A stretch of DNA of 64,000 bases, from contig NW_003314264.1 of NCBI RefSeq assembly GCF_000143415.4, positions 1,442,733 through 1,506,732 of the forward strand, read 5' to 3'. The stretch comes from Selaginella moellendorffii. Lineage: Eukaryota; Plantae; Lycopodiophyta. The notes below the pieces were generated by a model. It saw only the letters and a program-made list of their open reading frames with translations. It was not told the DNA's origin and did no database searches. This document shows, in pieces, positions 159 to 45,102 of this stretch (positions are counted from its first letter, which is position 1; every line of letters starts with the position of its first letter). A program made the translations under genes and the position numbers.

Positions 159-231
<73 letters not shown>

Positions 232-317: not shown

Positions 318-357
<40 letters not shown>

Positions 358-364
358 ACTTTGT
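1..364 (+). rRNA. 26S/28S (LSU) rRNA gene fragment, 5' side of the LINE insertion site; degenerate copy that continues upstream of the window
   Basis: Conserved eukaryotic LSU sequence (GGGGAATCCGACTGTTTAATTAAAACAAAGCATTGCGATGG; GTAACTATGACTCTCTTAAGGTAGCCAAATGCCTCGTCATCTAATTAG; GACCCTGTTGAGCTTGACTCTAGTCCGACTTTGT) with scattered apparent C>T/G>A changes. Confidence 0.97.
348..364 (+). repeat. Target-site duplication copy 1 (CTCTAGTCCGACTTTGT)
   Basis: Same 17-mer at 37155-37171; 16-mer at 44823-44838. Confidence 0.95.
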
Positions 365-446
365 TAAATAGGGTATTTTATTTTCCAGTAAAAAACCAAA
401 AAGACTGGGCATGGTTTTGTTGGGTACAAATCCAGCTAAAGAGCCT

Positions 447-3400
447 TTACCTAGAGGAGCCTACAATGGAAGTACCTACGGAAAGGGGGGTTGCTCGCGA
501 GCTGGTGCCCGAAGGTCTTCCTAGATGTGACACTTGGAACCATTCATCCGGCGGTGTCCACATCCATTCCCGAGTACCTGCCTCCCCTTGCTTCCACAAA
601 AAATGCTAGATCTGTGCCTCTTTTTTTGCTTTTTCTGGACCATTTCTCCATCCTCTCTTTTCCAGCTGTAGGACACGGGCTGCTGCTGCAGTTATCATTC
701 TAGTCCACACCCGTGATGCCACCACCCTTGGTCCTTCTTCCTTGTCATTGAAAATCCTGTTACACCAGGCTTTCCACACTTCCCACATTGTAATTCCTCG
801 CAATAGATCTACTATCTCTGATGGAATTCCCTCTGTGTCTGTTCTCGTTGTGTTGAGCTGATCGAACCACGGTGCCTCTTCTTCTTTTGAGGACCATTTC
901 CAAGAGTCTGTTCCATTTCTCATTCCTGTAGCAGCTTCGCCCCACACTGCTGCTTCATACGTGAGGCACACTTGTCTTTGGGAGTGTTGTTGCAGCAACC
1001 AGCACGTGCTTCTCCACACGTCTTGTGTGCTTTCACATTCCCATAGTATGTGCCTTTGTGTCTCCCTCGCTCCGCATTTATCACATGTTTGGTCCAAGAG
1101 ATGTATATTCCGCTTAGATGGTAGTCGGTCTTGCATTGTCAACCACATAAAATATCTTGTTTTTGCTGCCCACTGTCCATTCCGTAGTCCTTTTAAAGTC
1201 TCTTGTTGCATCCTGTCTTGTATGTTAGCTCGTTTCATCCTTGATATCAGCAGCGAGTCACTGCGCGGGCAAATAAGCCTTCTTCCCAATCTTGTTTCGT
1301 ATGCAAAGAACTCTTCTTTTTTTCACCCTTGCCAATTCCATTCCATTGGATCCCAGGTCAGCTCACTTAATTTTTGTTGCCTAAACCAGTACATCCTAGC
1401 TACTAGGCCTTCCGATATCTTCGGGTCCATTGTTGCTGTTTTCTTATCCATTTTTATAACTCGTATCGGCTCTGCTCTTGACATGTCTGGTCGTGGACTT
1501 TCCTCGGGCACCTTGTATGGTAATAGTCGACCTGCCACCCTGACTTCGAAGACAACACACTTTGCCTGGTCTTGAGTTGCCGTATATATCACCTTTTCCT
1601 CGGCTATCCACCATGCTGGTGTCGTTTCTCTGACTTCCCTAATGCTCTGTTTGCAGTTCCTTCGTGCTCCTTCAAAGGCTGTTTCGAACTTTTTCAAGCG
1701 GTGTGCTGAAATTTCCAGCCCGTAGAAAGCTTTTAGTCTATCTCTGTTCATTTCTGTTTCCCCCACTTTTATTATCGAGTTGGCTTCTGCAAATGTTCTC
1801 ATCCCAACCCTGTGGAGATCCCGGCATACCTTGTCTATTTCTCTGTTCCCTGTTTCCCCCAGACTTTTCCCTTTATACTGAAACAGCTTATTAAGGAATA
1901 TTGGTTGTTGGTCCACCTTGTAACTGTTTGCCGGTTTTCTTTTTTCCATCTTGCTCTTGAGTTCTTTCCATAGCCTGAATAATTTTCCAGAGAACGTATT
2001 TGGTTTTGGCATTTTTAGAGCTCCTTCATTGAACAGCCACCTTTCATCTTTTTCCCAATTTTGTCTTGTGTGTTCTAGTCTATCAGGAATGACTTTGAGC
2101 AATTGGTAGCGTAGTAGGAGTTTCCATGGTTGGTTTCCAGGCATGTTCATTCGGTGAAAGATCTTGAAAAGCAGCGCCTTGCATTGTTCCTCTATATCTA
2201 TTATATTTATCCCCCCATTGTGTTTTGCTCTCGTGACTGAGCTCCATCCAACCTTTGCCCCTCCTCTTGATACTGTTGCCTGTCCCTTCCATACATATGT
2301 CCTGATGAGCTTGTTCATGTCTTTTAATGTTTTCTTGTCTAAGTTCCATGACGCTGCCAAGAACCAAATTTCCCCTAGCACAATATTGTTTGCCACTACA
2401 CACCTCGCCGAGAAGGATAGCTTTCGTGATGCCCAAAATTTCAGTTGATCTCTAAGCTTTTCGACCGCTTTTTGGTTCTGTGGGAGGGGGTCGTAAGCCT
2501 TGCCTACTTGGAACCCCAAATATCTTGTGGTTTCCCCTGGCTTCAGCCACTTAAACTCCCACTCACTCCCCCAGTTTGGCAGGTCAGAGCTTGGCAGCCA
2601 TATCCCCACCGATTTTCCCCAATTTATTCTTGACTCAGTTGCCAGGTTGAAGAAGTCTAAATCCTCCTTAACCTTGCTCATGTTTTCCGGTGATCCTGAT
2701 GTGATGATTCCCGTGTCATCCGCGAATGCGCTGGATTTCAACTGCCGTTCAGCTGTCCCTGCCAGATCTTGTAGCGAGTCTCTACACCCGGGCAATACCA
2801 GCCCCTCTGGCCCATCCTCCCTTGCTAAATAGTGCACTAAAGCATCGGCCACGAACAGGAATAAAAAAGGGGCTAGTAGACACCCTTGTCTTACTGACCG
2901 TTGTAGCTTGATCATGTTCCCCACTGTCCCATTTATTGTGACTTTGCTTGATGCACCTTGGTACAAGGTGGCCGTCCATCCTATGAACTCTTCTGGAATG
3001 CCAATCTTCCTCATTGTCATTTGCAGGAACTCCCAGTCCACTTTGTCATACACCTTCTCGTAATCTAGGAGTATTATTGCCATCTCTAGTCCTTGGTCCT
3101 TGACTTGTTCTTGCGTGAGCAGCACTGTCAAGATGTTGTCTACCAGTTGTCTGCCTTCCACAAATCCATTTTGGGTGTCGTGTATTGTCTCTGGCAGTAT
3201 CGGCCTTAATCTCTTGGCTAGCGCCTTGGCTACTATCTTGTATAGGGTGTTCAGCATCGAGACCGGTCTCCAATTTTTGATTAGAGATGCATCTCCCCCT
3301 TTTTTCGGAATGAGTGCAATTATTCCATCTATGGCTCCTGGAGGCCATTGTCCCATTCTCATCACCTCCCTCCACGTGTTCAACACTACTGGCCCAATCC

Positions 3401-4881
3401 ATTCCTAGTTCACTTTATAGTACGCTGGTGGCATCCCATCTTCCCCGGGCATCTTGTCGTCGTTCAAGTCTCTAACTGCCTCCTCTAGTTCTTCCAGTGT
3501 GAAGTTTCTACACAATGCTCGTGCTAAGGATTCATCTACTTTCCGGGGTACAGCCTGGAACACCTCGTTCATAGCTGTTTTCCTTTCTTCTGTCCATGGT
3601 TCCACCCTAAACAGTCCTTGGTAGTATGCCTCAGCCATCTTGTGAATTTCCTGTAAGCTTGTGTGTATCACCCCTTGGTCATCCTTGAGCCTGAACATTG
3701 GCGGGGACATGACTCTTGCTTTTATAGACTCATAAAACTCTTTGTTCAGCGCATTCTCGCTAATATGCCACTTGAGGTGTCCCAACCTTATAAATGCCTC
3801 CATTTTTTTCCGCCTCCAGGGTGAAAAGTTGAGCTTTGGTTCTTGCTAATTGAGTTCTGAGTGACGTATCCAGCGGGTCCAACCTGATAAATCTCTTAAT
3901 AGCTTCAATATTTCTTCTTATTGCTTGCACTTTTGTATAGACTTTTCTTTGTTTGTTCTGTGTCTTTTTCCGGATCTCATTGGCTATCTTGGTTGTGAAC
4001 TCGTGCAGATCTCCTCCTTCTTGCTGATTCCACTTTTCTTTTATGTAGTCATTCAGTTTCCTGTCCTCGAAGTTTTTCCAAGACACCGGTGCAGGCCTCC
4101 TTGTTCCCCACCTCTTTAAGATGGGAAGCGTCAATGACACCAAGTTATGATCCGAGAAGTCTCTGTATCCTGTTGCTATATCTAATTTTCCACTATTCCC
4201 ACCCAGTTCGGGTGATACATAAAAACGGTCTAGTCTTTGTTGAATTCCCCATTGCTGGTGCTCTTGCCATGTGAATCTTGGTTGGTGTTGTACAAAACCT
4301 GGGATGTTGTACGTATCTTCTAGTCCCAGCGCTAGCACTAGTTGTGCCCACATTGCTCTTTCCCTGCTTGTCCTTTTGTTTCTCATTTCTCCCCCATCTT
4401 TGTCTAGCTCCTCTTCCACAAAGTTGAAGTCTCCCGTGACCATCCATGTTGAGGGTTGTGTAGGTATTCAGTGTACCAATTTATTCCAGAAATCTGCTCT
4501 TTCAGAGGAGCTTCCTGCTGGTGCATACACATTTAGGAGGCCCACTAGCATATCTCCTATCTTAACCTGGACACACTGTGCTCTACCTGGTACCAGTATT
4601 GCATGATCTTCGACCAGGGATTCCCACGGGCCTTTTACCACTATTAATGTGCCTCCACTGCATGATACTACCGGATTCCAGAAATATTTCCCTTTCGTAA
4701 ACTTATAAACCAGGTCCATACTTGAGAGCCTATGCTCTTGCACACACAGGAAATCAAAACATTGAGTCACACCTTCTACTTGGCTAAGGTACTATCTAAA
4801 CTTCGTCTTTTTGTTATTCAGCGCTGATCTCTCCTTCTTCAGGCCTCCCATGTTCCACGTTCTCACGTTGACGTTAACCAT
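447..4881 (-). pseudogene. LINE A ORF2: APE endonuclease, reverse transcriptase and C-terminal zinc-binding domain; stops and frameshifts present
   Basis: Motifs TWNMGGL, LCVQEH, NVYAP, GDFN, RLDRFY, SDH; WRPVSMLNTLYK, LDYEKVYDKVDW, SVRQGC, AFADD; CDKCGARETQRHILWEC. Confidence 0.93.
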
Positions 4882-6273
4882 TTCTGAATCCTCGGGCGCT
4901 GCCAAGATGCTATCTCTCCACCCAATGGTATGGTCCCATTGGGCGGAGTGGCCATGCAAACGGGATTTTCACCGTTCCTCGGAACCTGAACGAGTTCGGC
5001 GCTTCCTCCACGAAATTGTCTTCTCGAATCGAAAACCTCTGTGGGTTCCAGTTGAAGTTGTAGGCTAGAATATCCTCTAGAGTCCGGCCTATGTCTTGTC
5101 CAGGCAAGATCAAAATCACCGGTGGGGCGTATCCAATTCTGTTGTCGATCCATTCCCCCAGAAACTTGGGAGGGTTCGTTCCACTGACATAGAGCTCTAT
5201 TTCACAAACTGCTCTTCTTGGGGGAGTGAATCCTAGAGGACAGTTTCCTCTTGCAAAGCCTTCCGTTCTTCCTGATCTTGAGCGCGACTATTGTTGTTCT
5301 ACTGGCCTTGGCCCCCTTTGTGTAGCCTACTGTGGTGGTAGTTCTCCTTTATCCTGGACAATCTCTACGTCTGTGTCAAGTCCCTTTGCCTCCCCCATGG
5401 CTTGTCCTTCAAAGAGTCTTCCTATCAGCCTCCATTCTTTCCCTCGCGAAGCCCCCGACTGTCCTTTTTCCGGCTTGGCTGCTGTTGATTGCTCCCCTTG
5501 TCCCTCCTCCTTCTGTCCTTTGGTTCGAGGCTTCTTGCTTTCTCCGCTGGAGGCCGCTTTCTCTATTATTTCCCTTTCCCCTCTGGCTCCTCGTTTTTTG
5601 CCTTCCGAGCCACTGTTTGTTTTCTGTCGGTCCTCTCCTGTTTCCTGCATTCCCCCCATGCTTGCTCCTCTGGCCAAACAGTGTTTCCCAATATGTCCCG
5701 TGCGCCGGCAAATAATGCATATGCTCGGGTTTGGTAACAGCATAACCCGAATCCTTCTTGGCCCTTGCCCCTTCCCTGGCTTGAGTTCTATCTCGAAGGG
5801 GATGTGTACTTCTTTCGGAATCCTGACTTTGACCGTGACTCTGTCTCCCACTAGCATTCCTTCCATCCTTGTAAACGTAGCGAACTGCCTCAGAATTGCC
5901 GCCAGAATCTTGTCTTTTGCCAGTGCCACGTCCATGCCCTGTAGCTCAAAGTTCACGATCACAGACGGTGGGAGTAGCATCCTTTTTTTCTGGGGCGTGA
6001 AGGTGTTGTGGTATGCTCTGAAGAAGAGCTGAAAGTCTAACTGTGCATACGCATCCACTCGCAGCAGCTTGTGCCGAGCTCTCTCGTCCTTGATGACCAC
6101 ATTATAGCATTTTTCCCCCAGGTCCTTCACATCTTCTGCTAAGACCGTGACCAACATGTCGTGATACGCCAGTGCTACGCACACCCAATCTGACACTACA
6201 AATCCTGCCGAGACTGCTCCTTCCACTATCACATGTATTGTTTCCTCAGCTCTTCTGGCTTGCAGCTTGTTTA
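4874..6273 (-). pseudogene. LINE A ORF1, C-terminal part (CCHC zinc knuckle)
   Basis: CIICRRTGHIGKHC; homologous to ORF 41690-43099; the ORF1 stop overlaps the ORF2 ATG region. Confidence 0.85.
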
Positions 6274-6824
6274 TGTAAGCGACTAATTTTTCCATTCTAC
6301 TTTAGTCACTTAACCACACCTTCGACCACTTGGAGGAGTCTCACTCACAACCTCCTTAAGTCCAATTCAGGACTTGGGACTTGCTAGCCCCAAGAATGGC
6401 ATCCATGCCACTCAACACTTGCACCTGGTCCAAGTGCTCCACGTGTCCGGTCCCAAGACCGACACCCAAAGGTACCACTGACATCTCGGCCCGTTACGCT
6501 AAGGCCATGCCCATTCACCTTTGCTGCACTAGTGGTCCAATACCACTTGCATCACCATCCCGTCTCTCCAAGACTGGGCTATCGGTCCACGAGTGGTCAT
6601 CCTAGATCCACTCCTTAGCATCCTTAGGATGCCCACAGACCTGGGGAATCGCCTTCCCCAAAGTCCCTTTGTCAATTCCTACCAAGTCCCTTTTTGCCCC
6701 TGGCCGTGTTTGCCAACATTGCCACTGGATCGAGGCCCACAGGCCCGACCACTAAGTCCCATGGTCCTCTGGGACTTCCTCACCACACGACTGTGTCCTT
6801 GGTCACTACCCCAGAGGACTGCTC
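6274..6824 (-). repeat. 3' LTR of the non-autonomous element, piece 1 (continues at 14346-14373 and 27693-28766)
   Basis: Near-identical to 32837-33387. Confidence 0.93.
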
Positions 6825-7975
6825 TGTAAGGAACCGACTCCCCGAGATGTCGTAGGCTAAAGGATCCCCAAAAGCTTGACCGAAATGACAAAGAGTTCAT
6901 CGGATGGGACCAAGTCGAGGATCGAGTCCAAGACCGACTCTAGGACCGAGTTCGAGATAGAGTCCGGAATCGAGTCCGAGACCGACTCGGGGACCGAGTT
7001 CGAGTCCGAGTTCGAGACCGAGTTCGAGACGGAGTCCGGATCTGAAATTGGGTCCGAGACCGAGTCCGAGGTCGAGTCCGAGGTCGGGTCCGAGATCGGG
7101 TCCGAGATCGAGTCCGTGATCGAGTCCGAACCCGAATCCGAAGTCGGATCCGAAATCGGGTCCGAGATCGAGCCAGAGACTAAGTCCAAATACTAATACG
7201 GGTCAAGGGGTGAAAGCCCAAAGCGTGCGTCTCCCAGGGGGGGGGGGGGGGCTGCAGGGGGTTCCAAAAGTATAGTAGGGATAGTGAGGTCCAGGAACCA
7301 GTTTTGAAGGGACTCTCCAGTTGGGCTTCCAAACCGACTTGAGGTTGAGACTGGGACCGAGGGGCCTTGGGTGGGAGTGAGCATGGACTTGGCTGGTGCC
7401 GGAGGGGCCATCCAAGGAAGTGCTCAAGAGCAGCTCCCACTCCCGAAAGGGAAACTGATTGCGGTGCTTCCGGCTCATGTGGAGTGGTGCCCCACTTGAG
7501 TACCATGCGGCTCATTGGTCCTCGCCCTTCCTAGGGGCTTGGGCCTTCCTTCGGGATGGAAGTGGGGGGCGAGAGGTACCCATACCGGGCCGCTAGGCCA
7601 CGGTGTTTCGCCCCGGCATCCCGAAGCAAGTGTTGCACTCAAGACTTGGGATTTAGAGGGTCCCATGATCAAGTCTTGTGGTACCAAGGGATGTTAGGAA
7701 CCTGGAAGCTTGGTGTGCTTGGCTGCTTGTGCTTGCGGGGAGTGTAGTCGAACCTTAAGTCCAGTCTAACCCGGGGAGGGGGATTGGGAGTGATTTGGGA
7801 ATCCGTGGAAGGATGGCTAACACCCCGTTGCTCGTGCAGTGAGTAGCTGAAACCAAGTAGGAGCTGGTACCATAGGCGAGAACCTTGGCGAGGGGACTTA
7901 GCAAAAGCCAAGGCAGTGTTGGACGGATAGACGAGGTAAGCTGGCAAATTGGAAAGGAAAAATTTGTGGCTTACA
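6825..7975 (+). repeat. Chromovirus 5' LTR
   Basis: Nearly identical to 13210-14340 (a few SNPs, one ~19-bp indel, poly-G length difference); contains a GAGTCC/GAGATC hexamer array. Confidence 0.97.
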
Positions 7976-8034
7976 ATTTGGTATCGGAGCCTTTATCTCA
8001 GTTCTAGCGAAGGATAGAGGCGGATTGCTGGGAG

Positions 8035-11000
8035 ATGGCAAGGGCAGGGCGTAAGCGAACCCAGACGGAGACGGAACCTCCGCCGGAGCTGGAGCCTCCG
8101 GTTGAACAGGAGGCTATGGATGAGGAATCCTTGCATGAGGAGGACTCTAGTGAGGAAACTTCCAAACAGGAGTCCGGTGGCAAGGTTCGGTCGTCCAAGG
8201 CTCGATTGGACGTGCTAGAAGGACAGTTGGCACAGACCAATGCCCTGCTGGAGACTCTCGTACGCAAGTTAAAGCGTGACGAGAAGCGGAAGAAAAAGCG
8301 AAAGACTGCGGATGAAGGCAGCGCAGAAGGTGCGGACCCTTCGGCAGGGACTGAGGCAAAACCAGACAAGGTCGAACAGACCGAAGTGGAATCAGTCCCT
8401 CAGGCAGTTCCCAAGTACAAACCAAAGCCCCCACCGGTGTTCAAGGGAGTGAACGACTATAAGGTTGTGGAGGATTGGTTTTACGATATGGAGGACTACT
8501 TCCGAGCGTTACGGTTACCGAGCTCGGAGAAGGTCCCATGTGCAAAACCATACTTGGCAGATAATGCCAAGTCTTGGTGGAGAACAACGGAGGCCAACGA
8601 AGGACCGGTGGCCACCTGGGACATGATGAAGGCGAGGATCCGCGCGACATACGTTCCTCCAAATGCCACTCTGCATCTGAGAGATGAGCTGAGTAGGCTG
8701 AAGCAGACTGGAACCATCCAGGAATATGTGAATGGGTTCATGGCAAAGAGGATACTTGTCACGGACATGGGGGATATGGATGCGTTCCATGCCTTTATAT
8801 CAGGTTTGCAAACCTGGGCTCGCGGTGAGGTGATGCGCTGGAACCCGACCAACTACAAGGAAGCGTTGGATGCGGCCATCAAGGTGCATTTCAACGATAA
8901 CCTGCGAAAGGGGAACACGACGGGGTCGGGATCCACGTTTCACAAAGGGGCCAAACCGAGGGGAACATATAGCAGGGGGAAATTCAAGAAGAGTTTCTCT
9001 AAGAATGAGTCCTCGGGATTCCGGAAAGGCAAATCCGGTGGCCAGCGAGCAAGTACGTGGGGGAGTCAAGCGAAAAGAGACAAACCCACGGATAAGAAGG
9101 TCAAGTCATATAGCAGCGTGGGAAACAACGTATGCTACAACTGCGGTGAAGCGGGACACTTTTCGAGGGAATGTCCCTACCCGAAGAAGGCCAGAGCCAA
9201 TATGGCCATCAAGTCGGGTGAAGTCCAAAATGAGGTATGTGATCCAGTCCCTAACTCAAAGTTACTCATTACACGAGCAACTTTGGTAGAGAGTCGTTCG
9301 CGACATCTACTAGCCCTCCGAGGGAAGCTCGGAGGTAGCTTTGTTAAGATCCTTATTGACACGGGTGCTTCGGATAATTTTGTGGTTGCAGACATAGTCC
9401 GGCAAGCCGGACTAACGGTGCAGCGGCTAGGCGAACCAAGGACTATAGAGTTTGTTCAAGGTAGCCAAAGCACCGATGAGGTACTTCGACAAGCGAGAGT
9501 CGAAGTGGGGACATGGAAAGTGGACATGGATTTCACCGTCTTGGACATGGCGGGATTTGACGTGATCTTCGGAATGGATTGGTTTAATCGGTTCGTGGTA
9601 GCCCTGCATGGACAAGGTAGGAACCTTGTGGTATTGGCGAATGCCCAAGGAAGAAGATCTAGGGTGGAGGCCCAGGATCTAAAGGTAGGGCAAAGCAAGG
9701 CCAAAGAGTCATGCTTAAACCTGGTGTCCACGAGAGGACAACTCACTAAAGGAACTAAGGCAGCCTTTTTGTGCTTACTCTCGGTGAAGAGTGACAAAAA
9801 GACAAGAACGGAAGAAGTACCTTTAGTGATCCAGCAGGTGCTGGACCAATTCCAGGATACGATGCCGGAGGAGCTACCGGCGGGGTTGCCCCCTGCACGA
9901 CCGATAGAACATAAGATTGAGCTAGTCGAGGGTGCTGAGGCGGTGGTTCGTCCACCCTATCGATTGAACAAAAAAGAACTCAAGGAGCTCAAGAGCCAAC
10001 TAGAGGAGTTGGTGGACAAAGGGTATGTTAGGTTGAGCAAGTCGCCGTATGGGGTGCCGGTGCTATTTGTGAAAAAGAAAGATGGATCTATGCGCATGTG
10101 CATAGACTACCGGTTGCTCAACAAGTATACCAAGAAGAACAAGTACCCTTTGCCAAGGATCGAGGACCTGTTCGATAGGTTGGGAAAGGCAAAATACTTC
10201 TCGAGGATTGACCTAAGGTCAGGATACTACCAGATCAGGGTAGCTGAGGAAGATGTCGAGAAGACAACCTGTCGAACGAGGTATGGGAGCTTTGAGTTTC
10301 TGGTGATGCCCTTTGGGCTGTGCAATGCGCCGGCAACGTTTTCGGCGTTGATGAACCACATCTTTGTACCCTACCTGGATCACTTCGTGGTCGTCTATAT
10401 TGACGACATCCTGATCTATAGCGAGACGCTAGAGGAGCATGCCGAACACTTAGCGAAGGTGTTTGAGAAACTAAGGGAACACAAACTGTATGCTAAAGAG
10501 AGCAAATGTGACTTTGCTCAACAAGAGGTAAAGTTTCTAGGGCATGTGGTGGGCCAGGACGGGCTCAAGGTGGACCCGGAGAAGGTCCAAGCGATCCAGG
10601 ATTGGGAGCGACCATCGAATGTACATGAGTTGAGGGCATTCCTGGGGCTATGCAACTACTATCGAAAGTTTATCAGACACTATTCGAGAGTAGCCCTGCC
10701 CTTAACGGACCAAACAGGAAAAGGGAAGATGGTATGGACAGCAGAATGCGAGACGGCATTCGTCCACCTCAAAGGGAAGTTGAGGAAGGCTCCCGTATTG
10801 GCATTGCCAGACTTTGGTAAGGACTTTGAGGTAGAAACGGATGCTTCGGACTTTGCGTTGGGCGCAGTTCTGAAGCAAGACAACCATCCGGTAGCGTTCT
10901 TCTCGAAGAAGCTGGACAAGGCTCAACGGAAGTGGCCTGCCCACGAGAAGGAATTGTTTGCGGTGGTCAAGGCACTCAAGGAGTGGCGACACTACCTTGG

Positions 11001-12806: not shown

Positions 12807-13209
12807 AAATATCAATTTGCAAAGTTGAGCAAGTGGCATATGTTGGGACCCGAAGGCGCGCCAAAGGTAAGCTAATTACCATGGGTTGGATAGGTCGACC
12901 AGGCGTAGGGCACTACGCCCGACTCCCCGCGGGGATGTCGAATCCGTAGACGTATTCTACAGAGGTTGGGTTCGAGTCCCAACCCCCTAGTAAAGCAAGG
13001 CTGGGTTCAAGTCCCGACCCTATACTAGGGCGTGGTGAAGTGAGGAGTATAGGGACACCTATATTCCGTTGTCATGGGCTCTTGGCCGGGGAGGCTAACT
13101 TAGGCACACCACTAAGTGGGGGGATGCCCCCGGAGACATGGACAACAAGTCGTAGGATAAAACGAGACATTCGATGTGGGCATCGAACTTCTTCTATGGG
13201 TGGTGGAGT

Positions 13210-21420: not shown

Positions 21421-21623
21421 CTTCAAGACACACCCAGTTTGTAACTTCGCCGCCAACTCCGCCGACCACTCCGCCACCCACACGCAGCCCACTTGGCGTC
21501 CCGGGAGATTTCAGCGCCACTCTCCAACTGTAAGTGGCAGAGTAGCCTTGCTGCTACAATCCGCTGCACACACAGTGCACATTCGCCAGCGAGTCCGGTT
21601 GTCACGCCTCCATTCGGCTTCAA

Positions 21624-28222: not shown

Positions 28223-28254
<32 letters not shown>

Positions 28255-32821: not shown

Positions 32822-32833
32822 GCTCTGATACCA
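32822..32833 (-). promoter_or_regulatory. Primer-binding site (tRNA-iMet)
   Basis: TGGTATCAGAGC on the minus strand, 3 nt from the LTR. Confidence 0.92.
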
Positions 32834-32836
32834 AGT

Positions 32837-33921: not shown

Positions 33922-33953
<32 letters not shown>

Positions 33954-34570
33954 CCGGTCTCGGTCTCGACTTCGGACTCCATCTCGGACTCCATCTCGGA
34001 CTCCATCTCGGACTCCATCTCGGACTCCATCTCGGGTCCATCTCGGGTCCATCTCGGACTCCATCTCGGACTCCATCTCGGGTCCATCTCGGACTCCATC
34101 TCGGACTCCATTTCGGGTCCATCTCGGACTCCATCTCGGACTCCATTTCGGGTCCATCTCGGGTCCATCTCGGACTCCATCTCGGACTCCATCTCGGACT
34201 CCATCTCGGGTCCATCTCGGACTCCATCTTGGACTCCATCTCGGACTCCATTTCGGGTCCATCTCGGGTCCATCTCGGACTCCATCTCGGACTCCAACTC
34301 GGGTCCACCTAGGACTCCACTTCGGACTCCATCTCAGACACTCCCACGTGTCATGTGTTGGTCCTTTTGGGTCCCTTTTTGGAGCCTCGCCTTTTGCTCG
34401 CTTCGTGCTCGTTCCTCGAGCACTTCGTTGGGAGTTCCACTCCCGCTCTTGACTTTTCAAGTCGGAGCTTTTGGTCCAAACGTGTTACGCTCGTTTGGCT
34501 CTCGCTTCGGCCACTACCATGTGGCACCCTTCCGGCTCCACTTTGGGGCCTAGGGATTTTGTGTCTCACA
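32837..34570 (-). repeat. 5' LTR (intact) of the non-autonomous LTR element
   Basis: TGTAAGCAACTAAT...TGTCTCACA; matches the pieces 6274-6824, 14346-14373 and 27693-28766. Confidence 0.93.
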
Positions 34571-34575
34571 GTTTA

Positions 34576-36400
34576 ATTCCTCTATGAATTCTTCTGGGTC
34601 TACTTCCAACACATCGTGTGCTGGCCCATGTGGCATTCTCATGGGCTTCCTTGGTGGCATTATCTCCTTGATCTTCACTGGAGGTGGCCCGAATGGGACT
34701 ATGGGTGCATCCGAGCATACAGACATTTTCGAGTACTGCGGCAGTACCTTCGGGTATCCTGTCTCCGGTTCTTGCTTTCCATCCGTGGATATCACTACTT
34801 CTGGCGTGAGCTCTTCCCGGACCCCTCTTGACGATGATGCTTCCCATTGTCTCACCTCATCCCACTTCCCTTTTCCCTTATCATCCCTTATCCTACCCTA
34901 GAGTTCCTGTCCAATTTGCGCTTCATATGTTCGTGCCACCTGTTCCATCTCATTCGGTCTCTCCTGTCTGGCTTCCTATTGCTGCCTTTCCTTGATGGCC
35001 TTTTCCCTCTCAGCTTCTTCTTCCAGCAGCCGCTTTGCTTCCTCTTCTACCAGTCGTCTGGCTTCTTGTTCTTTTCTTGCATTGGCTTCCCTGATTGCCT
35101 TGAAACAAGGAGGGCCCTTGTCCAGTGGACAGCACATCTTGACCCTTCGCTTGACCCCGGTCGGGGATCCTACCCACACTTCCTTCCCGCTGACTTCTTT
35201 TTCTGCCCTTGCCGCTGCGCTTTCCTCCCCCGCCCCTGGCGATTCATTGGTGATGTTTCTTCTAGGCACTCTTGTGAGTGGTGCTCCCTCTTCCTCGCTT
35301 GAATCCTCTTTTCCCTTGTTTTCTACATTGACTAGCGAGACTTCTCCTACCAGCACCTCTTCTGGATTGAGTACTTCCGGCAGCTGCACCCCTTGGGCTC
35401 TCCTGCCTGCAGTACTCATCCTCGCCATTGTCCTTGCTCGTGGCATATTTCCCCCCGTGTCTTCCTCTTTTTGCTTTTTCCCTTCTGAATCTTGTGTTCC
35501 TCTCCTCCCCTCACCTACTTTTTCCCCCTTTTCCTTCTCTTCTGTTCCCTCCACTTTGTCCACAACCCTCTTCCCTTTTGGAGATTTCTCCTCCTTGTCT
35601 TTCCTTTTCCTCTCGCTTACCGCATTGCTTTTGTCTTCACGCTGCCCTTCATTTTTTACCGCAAACAATGCCCTCCGGATTGACAAGTCCCCTTTAAATA
35701 ACGCTGACCCTAGCTGCCACTTGTCATTCCGCCATTTGCTGCTCGCTCCTCCACGTTTTTCTTCCCCCTTCCCTGTCCATGTATCTAATGCACATGCTTG
35801 TTTTCTTGGATTCCTCGGCTTCTCCTCGGACATTACCCCGCCACGCATCTCTCCCTTGGATTTCATGCATGGATTTTCCCCCCATGCATCTCCACGTGTC
35901 GCCTTGTCCTTCTTCCCCTCCCTTCCGACTGTGACCTGCTTGGTCGCTTTAATTCCCACTCGCTGCGTGTTGATGACGTTGTTACTGTCCTTGTTTTTCT
36001 CCCGATTTGCTATGATCTTGACAGTTATTCCGCCTTTCCCCCCTATTAACTCCTTCCTTGGATTTCCCGCACCTGCATTCATTTGCCGTCTAGCCGTTGT
36101 CTCGGGATTCCAGCCGCTCCCGATTCCTCCCATCTTGTTCCGCCGCATGTCCACCATCTCCTCCGTCCCTTCTTCTCCTCCCGGTCGTATCCTAGCCGTC
36201 CAGAGCAGTGGTTTTTTACCTTTGAACATCGTGATCTTTGCTTCAAGCTTTGCACTTCCTTTCTTGGGCGTTTCTCTGGCCAGCGAGCTTGGTCTTCCAA
36301 CTAAAGTGGAGCTTCCCTCTTGCCCAGTTACTTTTGCTCAAGATCTCGGTCGCATAGAGCTTTTGAACCTTCAGAAAAAAATTTCGGGTCCAAGCTGATG
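34576..36400 (-). pseudogene. LINE A ORF1, N-terminal K/E/G-rich part (start codon uncertain)
   Basis: ORFs 34976-36229 and 34550-34855 are homologous to 43071-44822 of copy B and join 6273 across the GTTTA TSD. Confidence 0.75.
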
Positions 36401-37154
36401 TCAGCCGGCCAGCCCAGTTTTGCTGTGCCCAAGATCCCCCCGACTAGTACTCCAGATCATTGCCTTATTGCGACCGTTCCTCTTATCCTCCCAGCGCACA
36501 CTCTTTCTTTTTTAGTGCATGCAGTGGAAAGTTCTTGGTGGACTTTTGAGACTTTTCACTTAGCTTTTTATAGCTCAACGATCTTACTCCTCTCTGGCTT
36601 GTTCCCCCGAGGACCAAAAGGACTTTCTTACAAGCTAATACTGTCAGCCGAGGGGGGGCTAGAAAGGATGTCGTTCGGAGCCATTCCAAACTTGAGATAC
36701 GAGCCAAAGAATGCACGGCGGGGGTGATTCAAGGGGATGCTTTCGATTCTTTTTTCTTTTTTCTAGCGCTTTGCAGCTGGAGGAGAGGCTTCGCTTCTAG
36801 CTTTGATCTTTAGCCTTTGTCTGGTGAACTCTTAGCTGAAAAAACTGGCCCACCGACTTGAAACCAGCTTGAACCACACTACGAGCTCTATCCACCCAAT
36901 CTCTTGCTGTACCTTGCGCGAGTCGCTCACACCCAGAGAAGGACCAAACTCACTGCCCAGCCACACTCAGAGCCATTGTGCTTCCGCCTGGAGCTTCCCG
37001 ATCAACTTGCAAAAAACCCTCTCGGATATGGCTGCAGTCGAGAAGATCCAACGGCGCGTCTCACTACCGTCCAGCGCCAGTGCCACACTCAAGCGTCCAG
37101 TCCACTCTCACCCAGCGGCTGCACTTCTCTCCTCTTGCCTTGGTGCCTTCCCTC

Positions 37155-37171
37155 CTCTAGTCCGACTTTGT
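37155..37171 (+). repeat. Target-site duplication copy 2 (rRNA-derived 17-mer between the two LINEs)
   Basis: CTCTAGTCCGACTTTGT lies between the 5' end of LINE copy A and the 3' end of LINE copy B. Confidence 0.95.
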
Positions 37172-37253
37172 TAAATGGGGCCTTTTATTTTCCAGTAAAA
37201 AACCAAAAAGACTAGGCGTGGTTTCATTGGGCACGAATCCAGCAAAAGAGCCT

Positions 37254-40200
37254 TTATCTAGAGGAGCCTACAATGGAAGTACCAACGGAAAGGGGGGTTG
37301 CTCGCGAACTGGCGCCCGAAGGTCTTCCGAGATGTGACACTTGGAACCAATAGTCCAGCGGTGTCCACATCCATTCCCGAGTACCTGCCTCCCCTTGCTT
37401 CCACAAAAAATGCCAGATCTGTGCCTCTTTTTTTGCTTTTTCTGGACCATTTCTGCCTCCTCTCTTTTCCAATTGTAGGGTGCGGGCTGCTGCTGCAGTT
37501 ATCATTCTAGTCCACACCCGTGATGCCACCACCCTTGGTCCTTCTTCTCTGTCATTGAAAATCCTGTTGCACCGGGCTTTCCACACTTCCCACATTGTAA
37601 TTCCTCGCAATAGATCTACTATCTCTGCTGGAATTCCTTCTGTATTTGTTCTCGTTATGTTGAGCTGATCGAACCGAGGTGCCCCTTCTTCTTTTGAAGA
37701 CCATTTCCAAGAGTCTGTTCCATTTCGCATTCCTGCAGCAGCTTCGCCCCACACTGCTGCTTCATACTTCATACGTGAGGCACACTTGTCTTTGAGAGTG
37801 TTGTTGCAGCAACCAGCACGTGCTTCTCCACACATCTTGTGCACTTTCGCATTCCCATAGTATGTGCCTTTGTGTCTCCCTCGCTCCGCATTTATCGCAC
37901 GTTTGGTCCACGAGATGTATGTTTCGTTTAGATGGTAGCCTGTCTTGCATTGTCAACCACATGAAATACCTTGTTTTTGCTGCCCACCGTCCACTCCATA
38001 GTCCTTTTAAAGTCTCCTGTTGCACCCTGTCTTGTATGTTAGCTTGTTTCATCCTTGATATCAGTAGCGAGTCACTGCGTGGGCGAATGAGCCTTCTTCC
38101 CAATCCTGTTTCGTAAGCAAAAAACTCTTCCTTTTTTTGTCCTTGCCAATTCCATTCCATTGGATCCCAGGCCAATTCACTTAGTTTTTGTTGCCTGAAC
38201 CAGTACATCCTAGCTACTAGGCCTTCTGATATCTTCGGGTCCATTGTTGCTGTCTTCTTATCTATCTTTATAACTCGTATCAGCTCTGCCCTTGACATGT
38301 CCGGTCGTGGACTTTCCTCAGGCACCTTGTATGGTAATAGTCGGCCTGCCCCCCCCCCCCGACTTCAAAGACAACACACTTCGCCTGGTCTTGAGTTGCC
38401 GTATATATCACTTTTTCTTCGGCTATCCACCATGCTGGTGTCGTTTCTCTGACTTCCCTAATGCTCTGTTTGCAGTTCCTTCGTGCTTCTTCAAAGGCTA
38501 CTTCAAACTTTTTCAAGCGGTGTGCTGAAATTTCCAGCCCGTAGAAAGACTTTAGTCTATCTCTGTTCATTTCTGTTTCCCCCACTTTTATCATCGAGTC
38601 GGCTTCTGCAAATGTTCTCATCCCAACACTGTGGAGGTCTCGGCATACCTTGTCTATTCCTCTGTCCCCTGTTTCCCCCAGACTTTTCCCCTTATACTGA
38701 AATAGCTTATTAAGGAACATTGGTTGTCGGTCCATCTCGTAGCTATTTGCCAGTTTTCTTTTTTCCATCTTGCTCTTGAATTCTTTCCACAGCCTGAACA
38801 ACTTCCCGGAGAACGTATTTGGTTTTGGCATTTTTAGCGTTCCTTCATTGAACAGCCACCTTTCATCTTTTTCCCAGTTTTGTCTCGTGTGTTCTAGTCT
38901 ATCTGGAATGACTTTGAGCAGTTAGTGGCATAGTAGGAGTTTCCATGGCTGGTTTCCAGGCATGTTCATTGGTGAAAGATCTTGAATAGCAGTGCCTTGC
39001 ATTGTTCCTCTATATCAATTATGTTTATCCCCCCTTCCTGTTTTGCTCTTGTGACCGAGCTCCATCCAACCTTTGCCCCTCCTCTTGATACTGTTGACTG
39101 TCCCTTCCATATGTATGTCCTGATGAGCTTGTTCATGTCTTTTAGTGTTTTCTTGTCCAAGTTCCAGGACACCGCCAGGAACCAGATTGCACCTAGCACA
39201 ATGTTGTTTGCCACTACACATCTTGCCGAGAAGGATAGCTTTCGTGATGCCCAAAATTTCAGTTGGTCTCTGAGCTTTTCAACCGCTTTTTGATTCTATG
39301 GGAGGGGGTCGTAAGTCCGGCCTACTTGGAACCCCAAATATCTTGTTGTTTCCCCTTGCTTCAGCCACTTGAACTCCCACTCACTTCCCCAACTTGGCGG
39401 ATCAGAGCTTGGCAACCATATTCCCACTGATTTCCCCCAGTTTATTCTTGAGCCAGCTGCCAGGTTAAAGAAGTCCAAATCCTCCTTGACCTTGCTCATG
39501 TTTTCCAGGGCTCCTGATGTGATGATTCCCGTGTCATCCGCGAAGGCACTAGATTTCAACTGCCTTTCAGCTGTCCCTGCCAGATCTTGTAGCGAGTCTC
39601 TACACTCGGGCAATACCAGCCCCTCTGGCCCATCCTCCCTTGCTAAATAGTGCGCTAACGCATCGGCCACGAAAAAGAATAAAAAAGGGGCTAGTGGACA
39701 CCCTTGTCTTACTGACCGTTGTAGCTTGATTGTGTTCCCCACTGTCCCATTTATTGTGACTTTGCTTGATGCACCTTGGTATAGGGTGGCCGTCCATCCT
39801 ATGAACTTTTCTGGAATGCCAATCTTCCTCATCGTCATTTGCAGGAACTCCCAATCCACTCTGTCATACGCCTTCTCATAATCTAGGAGTATTATTGCCA
39901 TCTCTAGTCCTTGGTCCTCGACTTGTTCTTGCGTGAGCAGCACTGTCAGGATGTTGTCTACCAGCTGTCTACCTTCCACAAATCCATTCTGGGTGTCGTG
40001 TATCGTCTCTGGCAGTATCGGCCTTAATCTCTTGGCAAGCGCCTTGGCTACTATCTTGTATAGGGTGTTCAGCATCGAGATCGGTCTCCAGTTTTTTATT
40101 AGAGATGCATCCCCTCCTTTTTTCGGAATGAGTGCAATTACTCCATCTATGGCTCCTGGAGGCCATTGTCCTGTTCTCATCACCTCCCTCCATGTGTCCA

Positions 40201-41697
40201 ACACTACTGGCCCAATCCATTCCTAGTTCGCTTTATAATACGCTGGTGGCATCCCATCTTCCCCGGGCATCTTGTCATCGTTCAGGTCTCTGACTGCCTC
40301 CTCTAGTTCTTCTAATGTGAAGTTTCTACACAAGGCTTGTGCTAAGGATTCATCTACTTTCCGGGGCATAACCTGGAGCACCTCATTCATGGCTGTTTTC
40401 CTTTCTTTTGTCCATGGTTCCGCCATAAACAGTCCTTGGTAGTATGCCTCAGCCATCTTGTGCTTTCCTGTAGGCTCGTGTGCATCACCCCTTGGTCGTC
40501 CTTGAGCCCGAACATTGGCGGGGACGTGACTCTTGCTTTTATAGACTTATAAAACTCTTTGTTTAGTGCATTCTCGCTATTATGCCACTTGAGGTGCCCC
40601 GACCTTATAAATGCCTCCATTTTTTCCGCCTCCAGGGTGAAAAGTTGGGCTTTGGTTCTTGCTAACTGAGTTCTGAGTGACGCATCCAGCGGGTCCAACC
40701 TAATCAATCTCTTAATAGCTTCAATATTTCTTCTTATAGCTTGCACTTTTTTATAGACTTTTCTTCGTTTGTTCTGTGTCTTTTTCCTGATCTCATTGTC
40801 TATCTTGATTGTGAACTTGTGCAGATCCCCTCCTTCTTGTTGATTCCACTTTTCTTTTATGTAATCATTCAGCTCTCTATCCTCAAAATTTTTCCGAGAT
40901 ACTGGTGCAGGCCTCTTTGTTCCCCACCTCTTTAAGATGGGAAGGGTCAATGATACTGAGTTGTGATCCGAGAAGTCTCTGTATCCCGTGGCTATGTCTA
41001 GTTTTCCACTGTTCTGACACAGTTCTGGTGACACATAAAACCGGTCCAGTCTTCGTTGTATTCCTCGTTGCTGGTGCTCTTGCCATGTGAACCTTGGCTG
41101 GTGTTGCACAAAGCCCGAGATGTTGTATGTGTCTTCTAGCCCCATAGCTAGCACTAGTTGTGCTCACATTGCTCTTTCCCTGCTCGTCCTCTTATCTCTC
41201 ATTTCTCCCCCATCTTTGTCTAGCTCTTCTTCCACAAAGTTGAAATCTCCCGTGACCATCCATGCTGAGGGTTGTGCAGGTATTCGGTGTACCAACTCAT
41301 TCCAGAAGTCTGCCCTTTTGAAGGAGCTTCCTGCTGGTGCATACACATTCAGGAGGCCCACTAGCATATCACCTATCTTAAACTGGACACACTGTGCTCT
41401 GCCCGGTACCAGTATTGCATGATCTTCAACCAGGGATTCCCACGGGCCTTTTACTACTATTAACGTGCCTCCACTGCCTAATACTGCCGGATTCCAGAAA
41501 TATTTTCCCTTCGTAAACTTATAAACCAGGTCCAACCTTGAGAGCCTATGCTCTTGCACACACAAGAAATCAAAACATTGCGTCACTCCTTCTACTTGCC
41601 TAAGGTACTATCTAAACTTCATCTTCTTATTAGTCAACGCTGGTCTCTCCTTCTTCAGGCCTCCCACGTTCCACATTCTCACATTGACGTTAACCAT
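37254..41697 (-). pseudogene. LINE B ORF2 (APE-RT-zinc finger), disrupted
   Basis: Same motifs as copy A, including WNVGGL, GDFN, LDYEKAYDRVDW, QGCPLAP and FADD; several frameshifts and stops. Confidence 0.93.
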
Positions 41698-44600
41698 TTC
41701 TGAATCCTCGGGCGCTGCCAAGACGCTGTCTCTCCACCCAATGGTATGGTCCCATTGGGCGGAGTGGCCATTGAAACGGGATTCTCACCGTTCCTCGGAA
41801 CCTGAACGAGTTCGGCGCTTGTTCCACGAGATTGTCTTCCCGAATCGAAAACCTCTGCGGGTTCCAGTTGAAGTTGTAGGCCAAAATATCCTCCAAAGTC
41901 CGGCCTACATCTTGTCCTGGCAAGATCAAAATTGCCAGTGGGGCGTATCCCACTCTGTTGTCGATCCATTCCCCCAGGAACTTGGGAGGGTTCGTTCCAC
42001 TAACGTAGAGCTCAATTTCACAAACTGCTCTTCTCGAGGGGGTGAATCCTGGTGAACAGTTTCCTCTTGCAAAGTCCTCCGTTCTGCCTGATCTTGAGCG
42101 TGACTGTTGTTGTTCCACTAGCCCCGGCACCCTTTGTGTAGCCTGTTGTGGTGGCATTTGTCCTTTATCTTGGACCATCTCTACTTCTGTGTCAGGTTCC
42201 TTTGCCTCCCCCACGGCTTGTCCTTCGAACCGTCTTCCTGTTGACCTCCATTCTTTCCCTCGCGAAGCCCCCGACTGTGCTTTTTCCTGCTTGGCTGCTG
42301 TTGATTGCTCCCCTTGTCCCTCTTGCTTCTGTCCTTTTGTTCGAGGCTTCTTGCTTTTGCCACTGGAGGCCGCTTTCTCTGTTGTTTCCCTTTCCCCTCT
42401 GGCTCCACGTTTCTTGCCTTCCGAGCCACTGTTTGCTTTCTGTCGGTCCTCTCCTATTTCCTGCATTCCCCCCACGCTTGCTCCTCTGGCCAAATAGTGT
42501 TTTCCAATGTGTCCCATGCGCCGGCAGATAATGCACACGCTCGGGTTTGGTAACAGCATAACCCTAATCCTTCTTGGCCCTTGCCCCTTCCCTGGCTTGA
42601 GTTCTATCTCGAAGGGGATGTGTACTTCTTTTGGAATCCTGACTTTGACCGTGACTCTGTCTCCCACTGGCATTCCTTCCATCCTTATGAACGTAGCAAA
42701 CTGCCTCAGTATTGTCGCCAGAATCTTGTCTTCGGCCAGTGCCACGTCCATGCCTTGTAGCTCAAAGTTCACGATCACAGATGGCGGGAGTAGCATCCTC
42801 TTTTTCTGGGGCTTGAAATTGTTATGGTATGCTCTGAAGAAGAGCTGAAAGTTTAACTGTGTGTACGCATCCACTCGCAGCAGCTTGTGCCGAGCTCTCT
42901 CGTCCTTGATGACCACATTATAGCACTTTTCCCCAAGGTCCTTCACATCTTCTGTTAAAACTGTGACCAACATGTCGTGATATGCCAGCGCTGCGCATAC
43001 CCAATTTGATACTACGAAACCTGCCGGGACTGCTCCTTCCACTATTACATGTATGGTTTCTTCCGCTCTTCTAGCTTGCAACTTGTTTAACTCCTCCATG
43101 AATTCTTCCTGGTTCTACTTCCAGAACATCATTTGCCAGCCCGAATGGCATTCTCGTGGGCTTCCTTGGTGGCATTATCTCCTCAATCTTTACTGGAGGT
43201 GGCCCGAACGGGACTATGGGTACATCCGGACATACCGACATTTTCGAATACTGTGGTAAAACCTTCGGGTATCCCGTTTCAGGCTCTTGCTTCCCTTCCT
43301 GGGATATCACCACCTCCGGCACGAGCTCTTCCCAGATCCCTCTTGATGACGATGCTTCCCACTGTCTTGCCTCATCCAACTTCCCTTCTCCCTTGTCCTC
43401 CCTCATTTTGTCATGAAGTTCCTGTCCCAATGGAGCTTCGTATGTTCGCGCCGCCTGTCCCATCCCGTCCAATCTCTCCTGTCTGGCTTCCTGTTCTTGC
43501 CTTTCCTTTACGGCCTTCTCCTTTTCCCTTTCAGCTTCTTCTTCCAGTAGCCTTTTTGCTGCCTCTTCTGCCAAGCGTCTGGCTTCTTACTCTTTTCGCG
43601 CATTGGCTTCCCTGATTGCCTTGAAGCAGGGGGGGCCCTTCTCCAGTGGGCAGCACGTCTTGACTCTTCGCTTAATCCCGGTCGGGGACCCTACCGCTGC
43701 TTCCTTCCCGCTGGCTTCCTTTTTTGCCCTTGCCCCTGCGCTTTCCTCCCCGACTCCTGGTGATTCGTTGGTGGGGTTTCTTCTAGGTGCTCTCGTGAGT
43801 GCTGTTTCCTCTTCCTCTCTTGCATCCTCTTTTCCTTTGTTTTCCACATTGGCTGGCGAGACTTCTCCTACCAGCGCCTCTTCTGGATCTAGTACCTCTG
43901 GAAGCTGCACACCCCTGGCTCTCCCTCCTGCAATACTCATCCTTGCCATTGTCCTTGCTCGTGGCATTTTTCCCCCAGTGTCTTCCTCTCTTTTTTTTTC
44001 CCTCTGATTCTAGCGTTCCTCTCTTCCCCTCCCTCTCTTTTTTCCCCTTTTCCCACCCTTCCGTTCCCTCCCCTTCTTCCACTTCCCTCTTTCCTTTTGG
44101 AGATTTTTCCCCCTTGCCTTTCCCTTGCCTTTCGCTTACTGCTTTGCCTTTGTCTTCACGCTACCCCTCGTCTTTTACCGAAAACAATGCCCTCCGGATT
44201 GACAAGTCCCCTTTAAATAGCACTGACCCTGGCTGCCACATGTCATTCCGCCATTTGCTGCCCGCCCCTCCACGTTTTTCTTCCCCCTTTCCTGTCCACA
44301 TTGATAGCGCACATGATTGCTTTCTTGGATTCTTCGGCTTCTCCTCAGACATGACCCCGCCACGCGACTCTCCCTTGGATTTCCTACATGGATTTTCTCC
44401 CCATGCGTCTCCACTTGTCGCCTTGTCCTTCTTCCCCTCCCTTCCAACAGTGACCTGCTCGGTCTCTTTAATTCCCACTGGCTACGTGGTGATGACGTTG
44501 TTACTGTCCTCGTTTTTCTCCCAATTTGCTACGATCTTGACAATTATTCCGCCTTTCCCCCCTATTAACTCCTCCCTTGGATTTCCCGCACCCGCATTCA

Positions 44601-44822
44601 TTCGCCGTCTAGCCGTTGTCTCGGGATTCTGGCCGCTCCCAATTCCTCCCATCTTGGTCTGCTGCGTGTCCACCATCTCCTCCGTCCCTTCTTCTCCTCT
44701 CGGTCGCATCCTAGCCGTCCAGAGCAGCGGTTTTTTGCCTTTGAACATCGTGATCTTGCTTCAAGCTTTGCACTTCCTTTCTTGGGCATTTCTCTGGCCA
44801 GCGAGCTTGGTCTTCCAACCCA
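41690..44822 (-). pseudogene. LINE B ORF1, 5'-truncated and disrupted
   Basis: ORFs 41690-43099, 43071-43574, 43587-43967 and 44161-44748 match copy A ORF1. Confidence 0.85.
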
Positions 44823-45102
44823 TCTAGTCCGACTTTGTGAAATGACTTGAGAGGCGTAGAATAAGTGGGAGCTTCGGCGCAAGTGAAATACCACTACTTT
44901 TAATGTTATTTTACTTACTCCGTGAGGTGGAGACGGGGCCTGGCCCCTTCTTCTTGTCCCAAGGCCGGCTCATGCCGGCCAATCTAGGTGGATGACATTG
45001 TCAGGTGGGGAGTTTGGCTAGGGCAGCACATCTGTTAAAAAATAACGCAAGTGTCCTAAAATGAGCTTAACGAGAACAGAAATCTCGTGTGGAACAAAAG
45101 GG
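44823..45102 (+). rRNA. 26S/28S rRNA fragment, 3' side of the insertion site, truncated at the Cassandra array
   Basis: TCTAGTCCGACTTTGTGAAATGACTTGAGAGG..GAATAAGTGGGAGC..GTGAAATACCACTACT..GTCAGGTGGGGAGTTTGGCT..ACAGAAATCTCGTGTGGAACAAAAGGG directly continues the sequence that stops at 364. Confidence 0.96.

Follow-up and report, generated by a model that had tools for sequence, protein, structure and literature searches.

A LINE family of Selaginella moellendorffii inserts repeatedly at one nucleotide of the 26S rRNA gene

R1, R2 and their relatives are the classic models of retrotransposon target choice and are now being developed for gene insertion. To our knowledge, all well-described long interspersed nuclear elements (LINEs) that are site-specific for ribosomal RNA genes (rDNA) come from animals. 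Strict targeting is also found in the Tx1 clade, with Tx1L, Mutsu in 5S rDNA, Keno in U2 small nuclear RNA (snRNA) genes, and Kibi and Koshi in microsatellites. Here we describe a LINE family of the lycophyte Selaginella moellendorffii, met in a window of 64,000 nt (RefSeq assembly GCF_000143415.4, contig NW_003314264.1, positions 1,442,733 to 1,506,732, forward strand; "the window" below is this whole stretch). The family inserts repeatedly at one nucleotide of the 26S rRNA gene and in this respect belongs to the target-specific class of LINEs.

A full-text literature search found no LINE with a fixed site in a plant 26S gene; Repbase, in which S. moellendorffii repeats were deposited, and Dfam lay outside its scope, and prior annotation is possible. 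For plants, a 2024 review of rDNA and transposable elements (PMC10946416) describes mostly long terminal repeat (LTR) elements in 18S or spacers, and apart from R2 entries for rice and maize it lists no LINE with a defined plant 26S site. Those entries ('R2 into 28S' for Oryza sativa and Zea mays in its Table 1, citing Kojima and Fujiwara 2004) conflict with statements that R2 is found in animals only. According to the Utopia paper (PMC4640811), most target-specific LINEs fall into three groups, and Tx1 is among them. Plant L1s are described as dispersed and mostly poly(A)-tailed, and stringent 3'-end recognition has been reported for one monocot lineage (PMC3472496).

Repeated insertion at one 26S nucleotide

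The 26S sequence in the window stops at position 364 and resumes at 44823. The two pieces defined by Rfam are contiguous across the site in the large-subunit (LSU) rRNA model, and 16 nt, TCTAGTCCGACTTTGT (model positions 2427-2442), are found on both, so this is a true target-site duplication. Exactly three copies of the 16-mer occur in the window, where 0.03 would be expected by chance and none of 100 shuffles reached three. They bracket two LINE copies, A and B, both on the minus strand and therefore antisense to the rRNA (Table 1), with the same 3' junction, ...CCC(C/T)ATTTA/ACAAAGTCGGACTAGA (outside brackets, a slash between bases marks a junction or a cut). By BLAST, B is 91.7% identical to A over 365-6273 and 86.3% over 34571-36301; A, a full-length copy, extends 854 bp further 5' and is the longer of the two, and B is 5'-truncated. 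The R2 site (TTAAGG/TAGCC) is intact at ~196-206, and the new site lies 163 nt 3' of it. A preliminary description of the window, made from the sequence alone, had reported the interrupted 26S gene, the threefold 16-mer, the full-length and the truncated, diverged antisense copy with their common 3' junction, and a distance of ~160 nt from an intact R2 site, and all of this was recovered here.

The same description had proposed independent insertion at one 26S nucleotide and suggested tabulating the flanks of further copies. Six further places in the S. moellendorffii assembly were collected by protein similarity, with rDNA not used as a query. The census therefore covers 7 places (the window and these six) with 16 LINE junctions, a sample drawn from annotated gene models. 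At 15 of the 16 LINE 3' ends the element is joined to ACAAAGTCGGACTAGA at one and the same nucleotide of the 16-mer, and 13 of the 16 5' ends directly follow the 16-mer, at at least 10 different truncation points; both counts run over all 7 places. Three subfamilies, F1, F2 and F3, with ~65% DNA identity between them and 88-96% pairwise identity within subfamilies, are interleaved in head-to-tail arrays. Truncation is variable: array members, each bounded by 16-mers, range from 198 bp to full length. Independent insertion is thus borne out by 3' ends, 5' ends and three subfamilies alike.

The individual places repeat this arrangement. At L002 (GL377582), four successive 16-mers are each preceded by a LINE 3' end, and the last continues into antisense 26S sequence. 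At L003 (GL377659), an F1 copy ends ...CCCCGTTTA/ACAAAGTCGGACTAGA and is followed by ~900 nt of antisense 26S. Real 26S sequence beyond the 16-mer, antisense to the LINE, is therefore visible in three places: the window, L002 and L003. An array at L004 (GL377636) has at least five members of two subfamilies, among them a full-length F1 copy that extends 26 nt further 5' than copy A. An 8-bp filler, GAGAGAGG, separates two 16-mers (12483-12522) where a full-length F1 copy of L004 has its 5' junction. Three F2 3' ends lie at the 16-mer at L006 (GL377720), where one F2 copy is full length (6982 bp) and has a single stop in its ORF2. Two further junctions come from L007/L008 (GL377637). Variants of the 16-mer are common to adjacent junctions of one array (...ACTAGC three times at L004, GACCA twice at L007), as would be expected if new insertions duplicate an existing 16-mer; this suggests that variants are inherited as the duplication is re-used.

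The one junction of 16 at an unrelated site, in this small gene-model-derived sample, is L001 (GL377565.1, 9948-13472). Here the element ends at the same 3' nucleotide, without the 16-mer, and adjoins the interior of a Ty3/gypsy element; this flank is 84.7% identical to window 7869-10043 and has just ACAA in common with the rDNA target. The 5' end of the L001 copy is cut by the terminus of a DUF7869-type transposon, 98% identical to window 14374-16320, and the same terminus also cuts an unrelated LINE at L009. A scan of JGI metagenome contigs for the junction pattern gave no match.

The rDNA in the window is an orphan or edge-of-array 26S fragment and no working unit. Its 26S flanks are decayed and carry transitions at otherwise conserved positions; the upstream flank is 97.3% identical to the 26S flank at L003 and 92.9% identical to that at L002. 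The Rfam match for the downstream piece is bounded at 44822-45226, and the rRNA ends at ~45100-45226; tandem repeats of 340-397 bp (45223-46106) begin exactly at the end of this piece. At L002 the array gives way to rDNA debris on the antisense strand (15348-16758 and 20656-20774), with 26S pieces, a collapsed 18S match and, ~5 kb beyond, a 5S gene. This pattern suggests that decayed rDNA units to which a 5S gene is linked persist away from the main arrays.

Copy A is itself interrupted by a 28.3-kb complex of LTR retrotransposons. The outer element's 5' LTR (6274-6824 and 27689-28766) is split by ~21 kb of further insertions, and 12-bp tandem repeats lie within the outer LTRs (28070-28372 and 33781-34083). 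Neither the nested insertions nor the divergence places the insertion of A before or after that of B. Ordinary plant genes adjoin the rDNA/LINE block (48151-62608; Table 1). The gene model EFJ35486 (S. moellendorffii) is 100% identical to part of copy A, and its close relatives all come from the same species.

Table 1. Features of the window (window positions; domain and hairpin limits as predicted)
Feature	Position	Strand	Evidence or remark
26S rRNA fragment upstream of the site, decayed pseudogene copy	1..364	+	Rfam LSU_rRNA_eukarya model 2078-2442, 437 bits; continues past the window start
Target-site duplication copy 1, TCTAGTCCGACTTTGT	349..364	+	3' flank of LINE copy A
LINE copy A (F1), 3' part: end of ORF1 and ORF2, with stops and frameshifts	365..6273	-	BLAST against B, frame map, Pfam
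Conserved 3'-UTR hairpin, copy A	405..435	-	RNAalifold, 14 tails of F1/F2/F3
Copy A domains	APE ~4791-3763; RT 3404-1326; zf-RVT 1322-609	-	Pfam
Nested LTR-retrotransposon complex inside copy A, 28.3 kb	6274..34570	.	TG...CA termini, 5-bp duplication GTTTA
Ty3/gypsy element, long open gag-pol frame, 1295 aa	8035-11922		within the ~21-kb insert
DUF7869 ORF, 1022 aa	15063-18131	-	within the ~21-kb insert
LINE copy A, 5' part: ~0.8 kb 5' UTR and ORF1 start	34571..37155	-	open stretch 36337-34979
Target-site duplication copy 2	37156..37171	+	common to A (5' end) and B (3' end)
LINE copy B (F1), 7651 bp, broken ORFs	37172..44822	-	BLAST against A, Pfam, frame map
Conserved 3'-UTR hairpin, copy B equivalent	37212-37242		
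Copy B domains	APE ~41607-40390; RT 40222-38969; C-terminal part 38921-37257	-	
Target-site duplication copy 3	44823..44838	+	5' flank of B, runs into downstream 26S
26S rRNA fragment downstream of the site	44823..45226	+	Rfam model 2425-2810, 220 bits
Two PPR ORFs	48151-48753, 50748-52580		
KUP/HAK potassium transporter exons	53816-54274, 55084-55668		
Ribosomal protein S19-family exon	59408-59881		
537-aa ORF	60995-62608		no Pfam match

Abbreviations: ORF, open reading frame; UTR, untranslated region; APE, apurinic/apyrimidinic endonuclease-like domain; RT, reverse transcriptase.

Element anatomy and relatives

The elements measure ~8.5 kb (F1) and ~7.0 kb (F2), with F3 as the third subfamily. 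F1 consists of a 5' UTR of ~0.8 kb, an ORF1 of ~1050 aa, an ORF2 of 1473 aa and a 3' UTR of ~80 nt. ORF2 of F1 is intact at L003 (7451-11869), where Pfam recognizes Exo_endo_phos (PF03372, E=2.5e-14), RVT_1 (E=5e-31) and zf-RVT (E=1.5e-8). The predicted protein, ORF2p, matches human L1 ORF2p with E=2e-42 over residues 304-903 (tower through RT and wrist); a second match to human L1 ORF2p over the CxxC...H...C region (HMMER i-E 140) is not significant alone. R2 proteins match the RT core only (E=1e-13 to 1e-15). ORF1 matched no Pfam family. It contains one CCHC knuckle in F1, which was not found in the ORF1 of F2.

The catalytic residues of the endonuclease (EN), E, Y, D, N and D, do not vary in an alignment of 25 sequences. 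Since the EN domain alone gives only a weak sequence match in the PDB, to ExoIII (E=0.012), we used fold comparison instead. An AlphaFold (AF2) model of the domain (confidence score pLDDT 88) has human L1 EN (1VYB) as its top fold match (E=1e-17, TM score 0.71-0.78), ahead of APE1 and ExoIII; neither R1Bm EN nor TRAS1 EN is among its top 50 fold matches. In ORF2 (L003:7451-11869, L004:3626-6952 and L006:4804-9429), F1 and F2 are 70% identical in RT and 49% in EN; in ORF1 they are 24% identical over the ~200 aa that align. Their target nucleotide is identical.

A poly(A) or A-rich tail is typical of L1 elements, if not universal. Here poly(A) is absent from all 16 tails, copy A's 3' UTR included, and each tail is joined directly to its flank; the ends read ...CCCCRTTTA in F1 and F3 and ...CCCCATTG in F2. 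The tails of all subfamilies align, and ~45-75 nt from the element end they share a predicted hairpin, in which two pairs are compensatory between F1 and F2 (CG/UA and AU/UA). These pairs amount to one evolutionary contrast, so the evidence for the hairpin is suggestive only.

Judged by its predicted APE, RT and Cys-rich C-terminal domains, the element is of L1 type. A HMMER scan of 1.8 billion representative proteins gave matches above 50% identity only among S. moellendorffii proteins. The next matches, at 28-43% identity, include proteins of Chara, Riccia, Adiantum and Closterium, a sea-turtle protein, and contigs from metagenomes or read assemblies. We built a maximum-likelihood tree of 55 RT domains, which is unrooted and lacks Xenopus Tx1L, mammalian L1 and R1-clade RTs. 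F1 and F2 group together (support 100/100) and are joined by another Selaginella LINE (99/97), and all of these fall within a clade of 12 rows (100/95) that also holds Adiantum sequences, a cluster of contigs and a LINE from a 5S rDNA array (L005, below). A 98/100 branch places all streptophyte-labelled rows on one side and a fish/turtle clade on the other. The latter contains NCBI-named 'transposon TX1' proteins and the 'pol-like proteins' Q76IM5 and Q76IM7, which reportedly stem from the Kojima-Fujiwara screen of target-specific Tx1-clade elements.

The preliminary description had labelled the element L1/Tx1-type. The L1 half of this label is supported by Pfam, by the human L1 ORF2p match and by the EN fold. 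The Tx1 half did not stand: the RT tree, unrooted and without Xenopus Tx1L, puts the family among streptophyte L1-like LINEs, and on this sequence evidence we assign it to the L1 superfamily and do not file it under Tx1. Membership of the R1 clade was not supported, in view of the position of the site 163 nt 3' of the R2 site, the antisense orientation and an EN fold that matches L1 EN first. An R2 type, with its restriction-like endonuclease (RLE), was rejected on the two ORFs, the N-terminal APE and the restriction of R2 matches to the RT core.

The LINE of L005 (ENA metagenome contig ERZ25070695 ctg131015_2x_c, 1-20340) is the closest relative outside Selaginella, with an RT 36-37% identical to that of the window element. 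The contig is an array of plant-like 5S rDNA, with 5S genes at 1002, 2598, 10376 and 19229 and LINE copies at ~4220-10375 and 11999-19228. The LINE encodes ORF1, with a CCHC knuckle like that of F1, and APE, RT and zf-RVT domains, and lies inside the 5S gene in sense orientation. The junction with 5S reads ...|CATACCGAGG at three LINE 3' ends, and CATACCGAGGCTACT(AC) precedes the LINE at two 5' junctions, where the element begins at different points; this gives a 15-17-bp duplication. This looks like a 5S-specific plant LINE. Whether green plants have their own undescribed lineage of L1-like elements that target rRNA genes, with a 26S branch in Selaginella and a branch at 5S position ~11-25 in another streptophyte, and with a specificity independent of animal R1, R2 and Tx1, we judge to be evenly balanced. 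No rRNA or other Rfam family was seen near the clade members L009 (Selaginella), L011 (Adiantum), L010 and L012 (two contigs of the cluster in the RT clade), where the L010 LINE ends at the contig end and the 3' end of the L009 LINE is cut by another transposon; with no target seen for these four, target specificity is not claimable for the whole clade.

Proposed integration mechanism and rival explanations

The data show that the copies have one and the same junction and a target-site duplication, that their 5' ends are independent, that their proteins have the architecture of the L1 type and that they lie antisense to the rRNA. We consider it very probable that this L1-superfamily family (F1, F2 and F3) integrates by target-primed reverse transcription at one fixed 26S site. 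Because the sense strand of the element coincides with the antisense strand of the rRNA gene, cDNA synthesis must be primed by the nicked rRNA-sense strand. ORF2p would nick this strand after ...GACTTTGT (Rfam LSU position 2442), in ...CTTTGT/GAAATG, and cDNA synthesis would start from the freed 3' OH on the element RNA, whose 3' end is defined and not polyadenylated. A cut of the second strand 16 nt away, between ...CTAGA and GTCAAG, would then produce the 16-bp duplication. Each insertion would make two 16-mers, and later insertions could re-use them to give head-to-tail arrays with exact 16-mer spacers; the window would be one such array, with two members, within a decayed orphan 26S fragment. 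The preliminary description had argued that the antisense orientation rules out R2-style co-transcription by RNA polymerase I (Pol I). This is a direct consequence of the orientation common to the window, L002 and L003, the three places with visible 26S flanks: Pol I co-transcription cannot supply the template. The element would then need a promoter of its own, presumably in the long 5' UTR of ~0.8 kb.

ORF2p, through its APE domain and/or other parts, probably reads the target sequence. The first nick site is T-rich and then purine-rich, reminiscent of the L1 EN preference TTTT/AA, and the precision with which both strands are cut suggests that ORF2p reads further sequence. A candidate recognition element for the RT is the conserved 3'-UTR hairpin, and read-through RNA carrying ACAAAG... 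may anneal to the nicked primer and fix the junction. The ACAA at the off-target site of L001 fits priming from a ...TTGT 3' end.

The alternative that survives best would assign the specificity mainly to RNA-DNA pairing, with an endonuclease that is only loosely selective in the L1-like T-rich/purine style (TTTGT/GAAA). Read-through transcripts of resident copies, ending ACAAAGUCGGACUAGA, would pair with ...TCTAGTCCGACTTTGT-3' wherever a nick or break lays it bare. The likeness of TTTGT/GAAAT to the L1 preference would suit this explanation, as would the 4-nt match ACAA kept at the sole off-target junction and the low F1/F2 identity of the APE domain (49%, against 70% for RT) at an identical target. 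Yet the second cut is fixed too, with the 16-bp duplication at nearly every 5' junction, which pairing at the 3' end cannot explain, and a new lineage could not be founded at the site without an initial specific event. Sequence-specific EN domains are, moreover, described for known APE-type rDNA elements, R1Bm for example (PMC1919474). We regard pairing as the main source of specificity as unlikely.

Far less credible is the multiplication of one insertion by tandem duplication or unequal crossing-over, with no repeated targeting. The two full-length F2 copies at L006, 99.8% identical and with the same 5' ends, could indeed reflect a duplication or an assembly effect. But the arrays mix three ~65%-identical subfamilies, with members from 198 bp to full length that are each bounded by 16-mers, and A and B differ in their 5' ends and resemble each other (91.7%) no more than they resemble copies on other scaffolds (88-91%), which speaks against a local duplication. 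For A and B, whose duplication after insertion the preliminary description had named as a finding that would undo its proposal, the different 5' ends and equidistant divergence rule it out. That the element itself brings along the 16-mer or a longer 26S piece, at its terminus or by 3' transduction, draws on the fact that most junctions are array-internal and show only the 16-mer, but it can be dismissed with near certainty, because the 26S in the window extends 348 nt to one side and ~300-400 nt to the other, the two sides being contiguous in the rRNA model with exactly 16 nt present on both, and L001 ends at the same element nucleotide without the 16-mer.

Some points weigh against a fixed 26S target served by target-primed reverse transcription. 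Most junctions are array-internal, and 26S sequence past the 16-mer is seen in three places only. The sample of 16 junctions is small and taken from annotated gene models, and among the places inspected there is neither an empty, functional 26S unit nor a true rDNA array. The F1 copies seen are 88-96% alike and mostly broken, and the best F2 copy has one stop in ORF2. Taken together, the census results exclude both local duplication and an element-carried 16-mer and establish repeated, nucleotide-exact targeting.

Comparison with known systems

If this account is true, a plant L1-type family with nucleotide-exact targeting, antisense insertion and a 16-bp stagger would represent an independent origin of the life-style known from animal rDNA elements, and the 5S-targeting relative would be a second one. 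Families at 26S and 5S would allow a direct comparison of how an L1-like endonuclease and RT gain specificity, and both would explain the orphan rDNA fragments and LINE arrays of the Selaginella assembly. Should green plants have a lineage of their own that targets rRNA genes, it would also offer a plant-derived, APE-based system in which to study, and perhaps exploit, site-specific insertion into a safe-harbour locus.

The family has the life-style of R1, R2 or Mutsu, but it belongs to a plant L1 lineage, uses a new site and lies antisense. Among ordinary plant L1-clade LINEs it has its protein architecture and its broad neighbourhood, with L1-like proteins of Chara, Riccia, Adiantum and angiosperms next to it. 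Unlike these, it has a fixed target, no poly(A) and, in F1, a very long ORF1 (~1050 aa).

Like the vertebrate Tx1-clade LINEs, it combines an L1-group architecture (APE, RT and a C-terminal Cys motif) with a strict target in a multicopy RNA gene. It differs from them in an RT that falls with streptophyte LINEs (the 98/100 split), and the 26S target and lycophyte host are new. With R2 and other RLE elements it shares the rDNA niche and a specificity for one site in the 28S/26S gene, the two sites lying a short distance apart. R2, however, has one ORF with a C-terminal RLE and N-terminal zinc-finger/Myb motifs and is co-transcribed in sense with the rRNA, whereas the Selaginella family has two ORFs and an APE, is antisense and shows only distant RT similarity to R2 (E=1e-15).

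In organization it parallels the rDNA-specific members of the arthropod R1 clade (R1Bm, R1Dm and others): a two-ORF LINE with an N-terminal APE, one fixed site in the large-subunit rRNA gene, a defined, poly(A)-free 3' end, a target duplication of short and fixed length and possible tandem arrays. The R1 site lies ~74 nt 3' of the R2 site, as against 163 nt for the Selaginella site. The EN of R1Bm cleaves both strands specifically (PMC1919474). R1 elements lie sense to the rRNA in animal hosts, whereas the Selaginella family lies antisense in a plant, and its RT and EN are L1-like, with human L1 ORF2p and L1 EN as their best relatives in the PDB.

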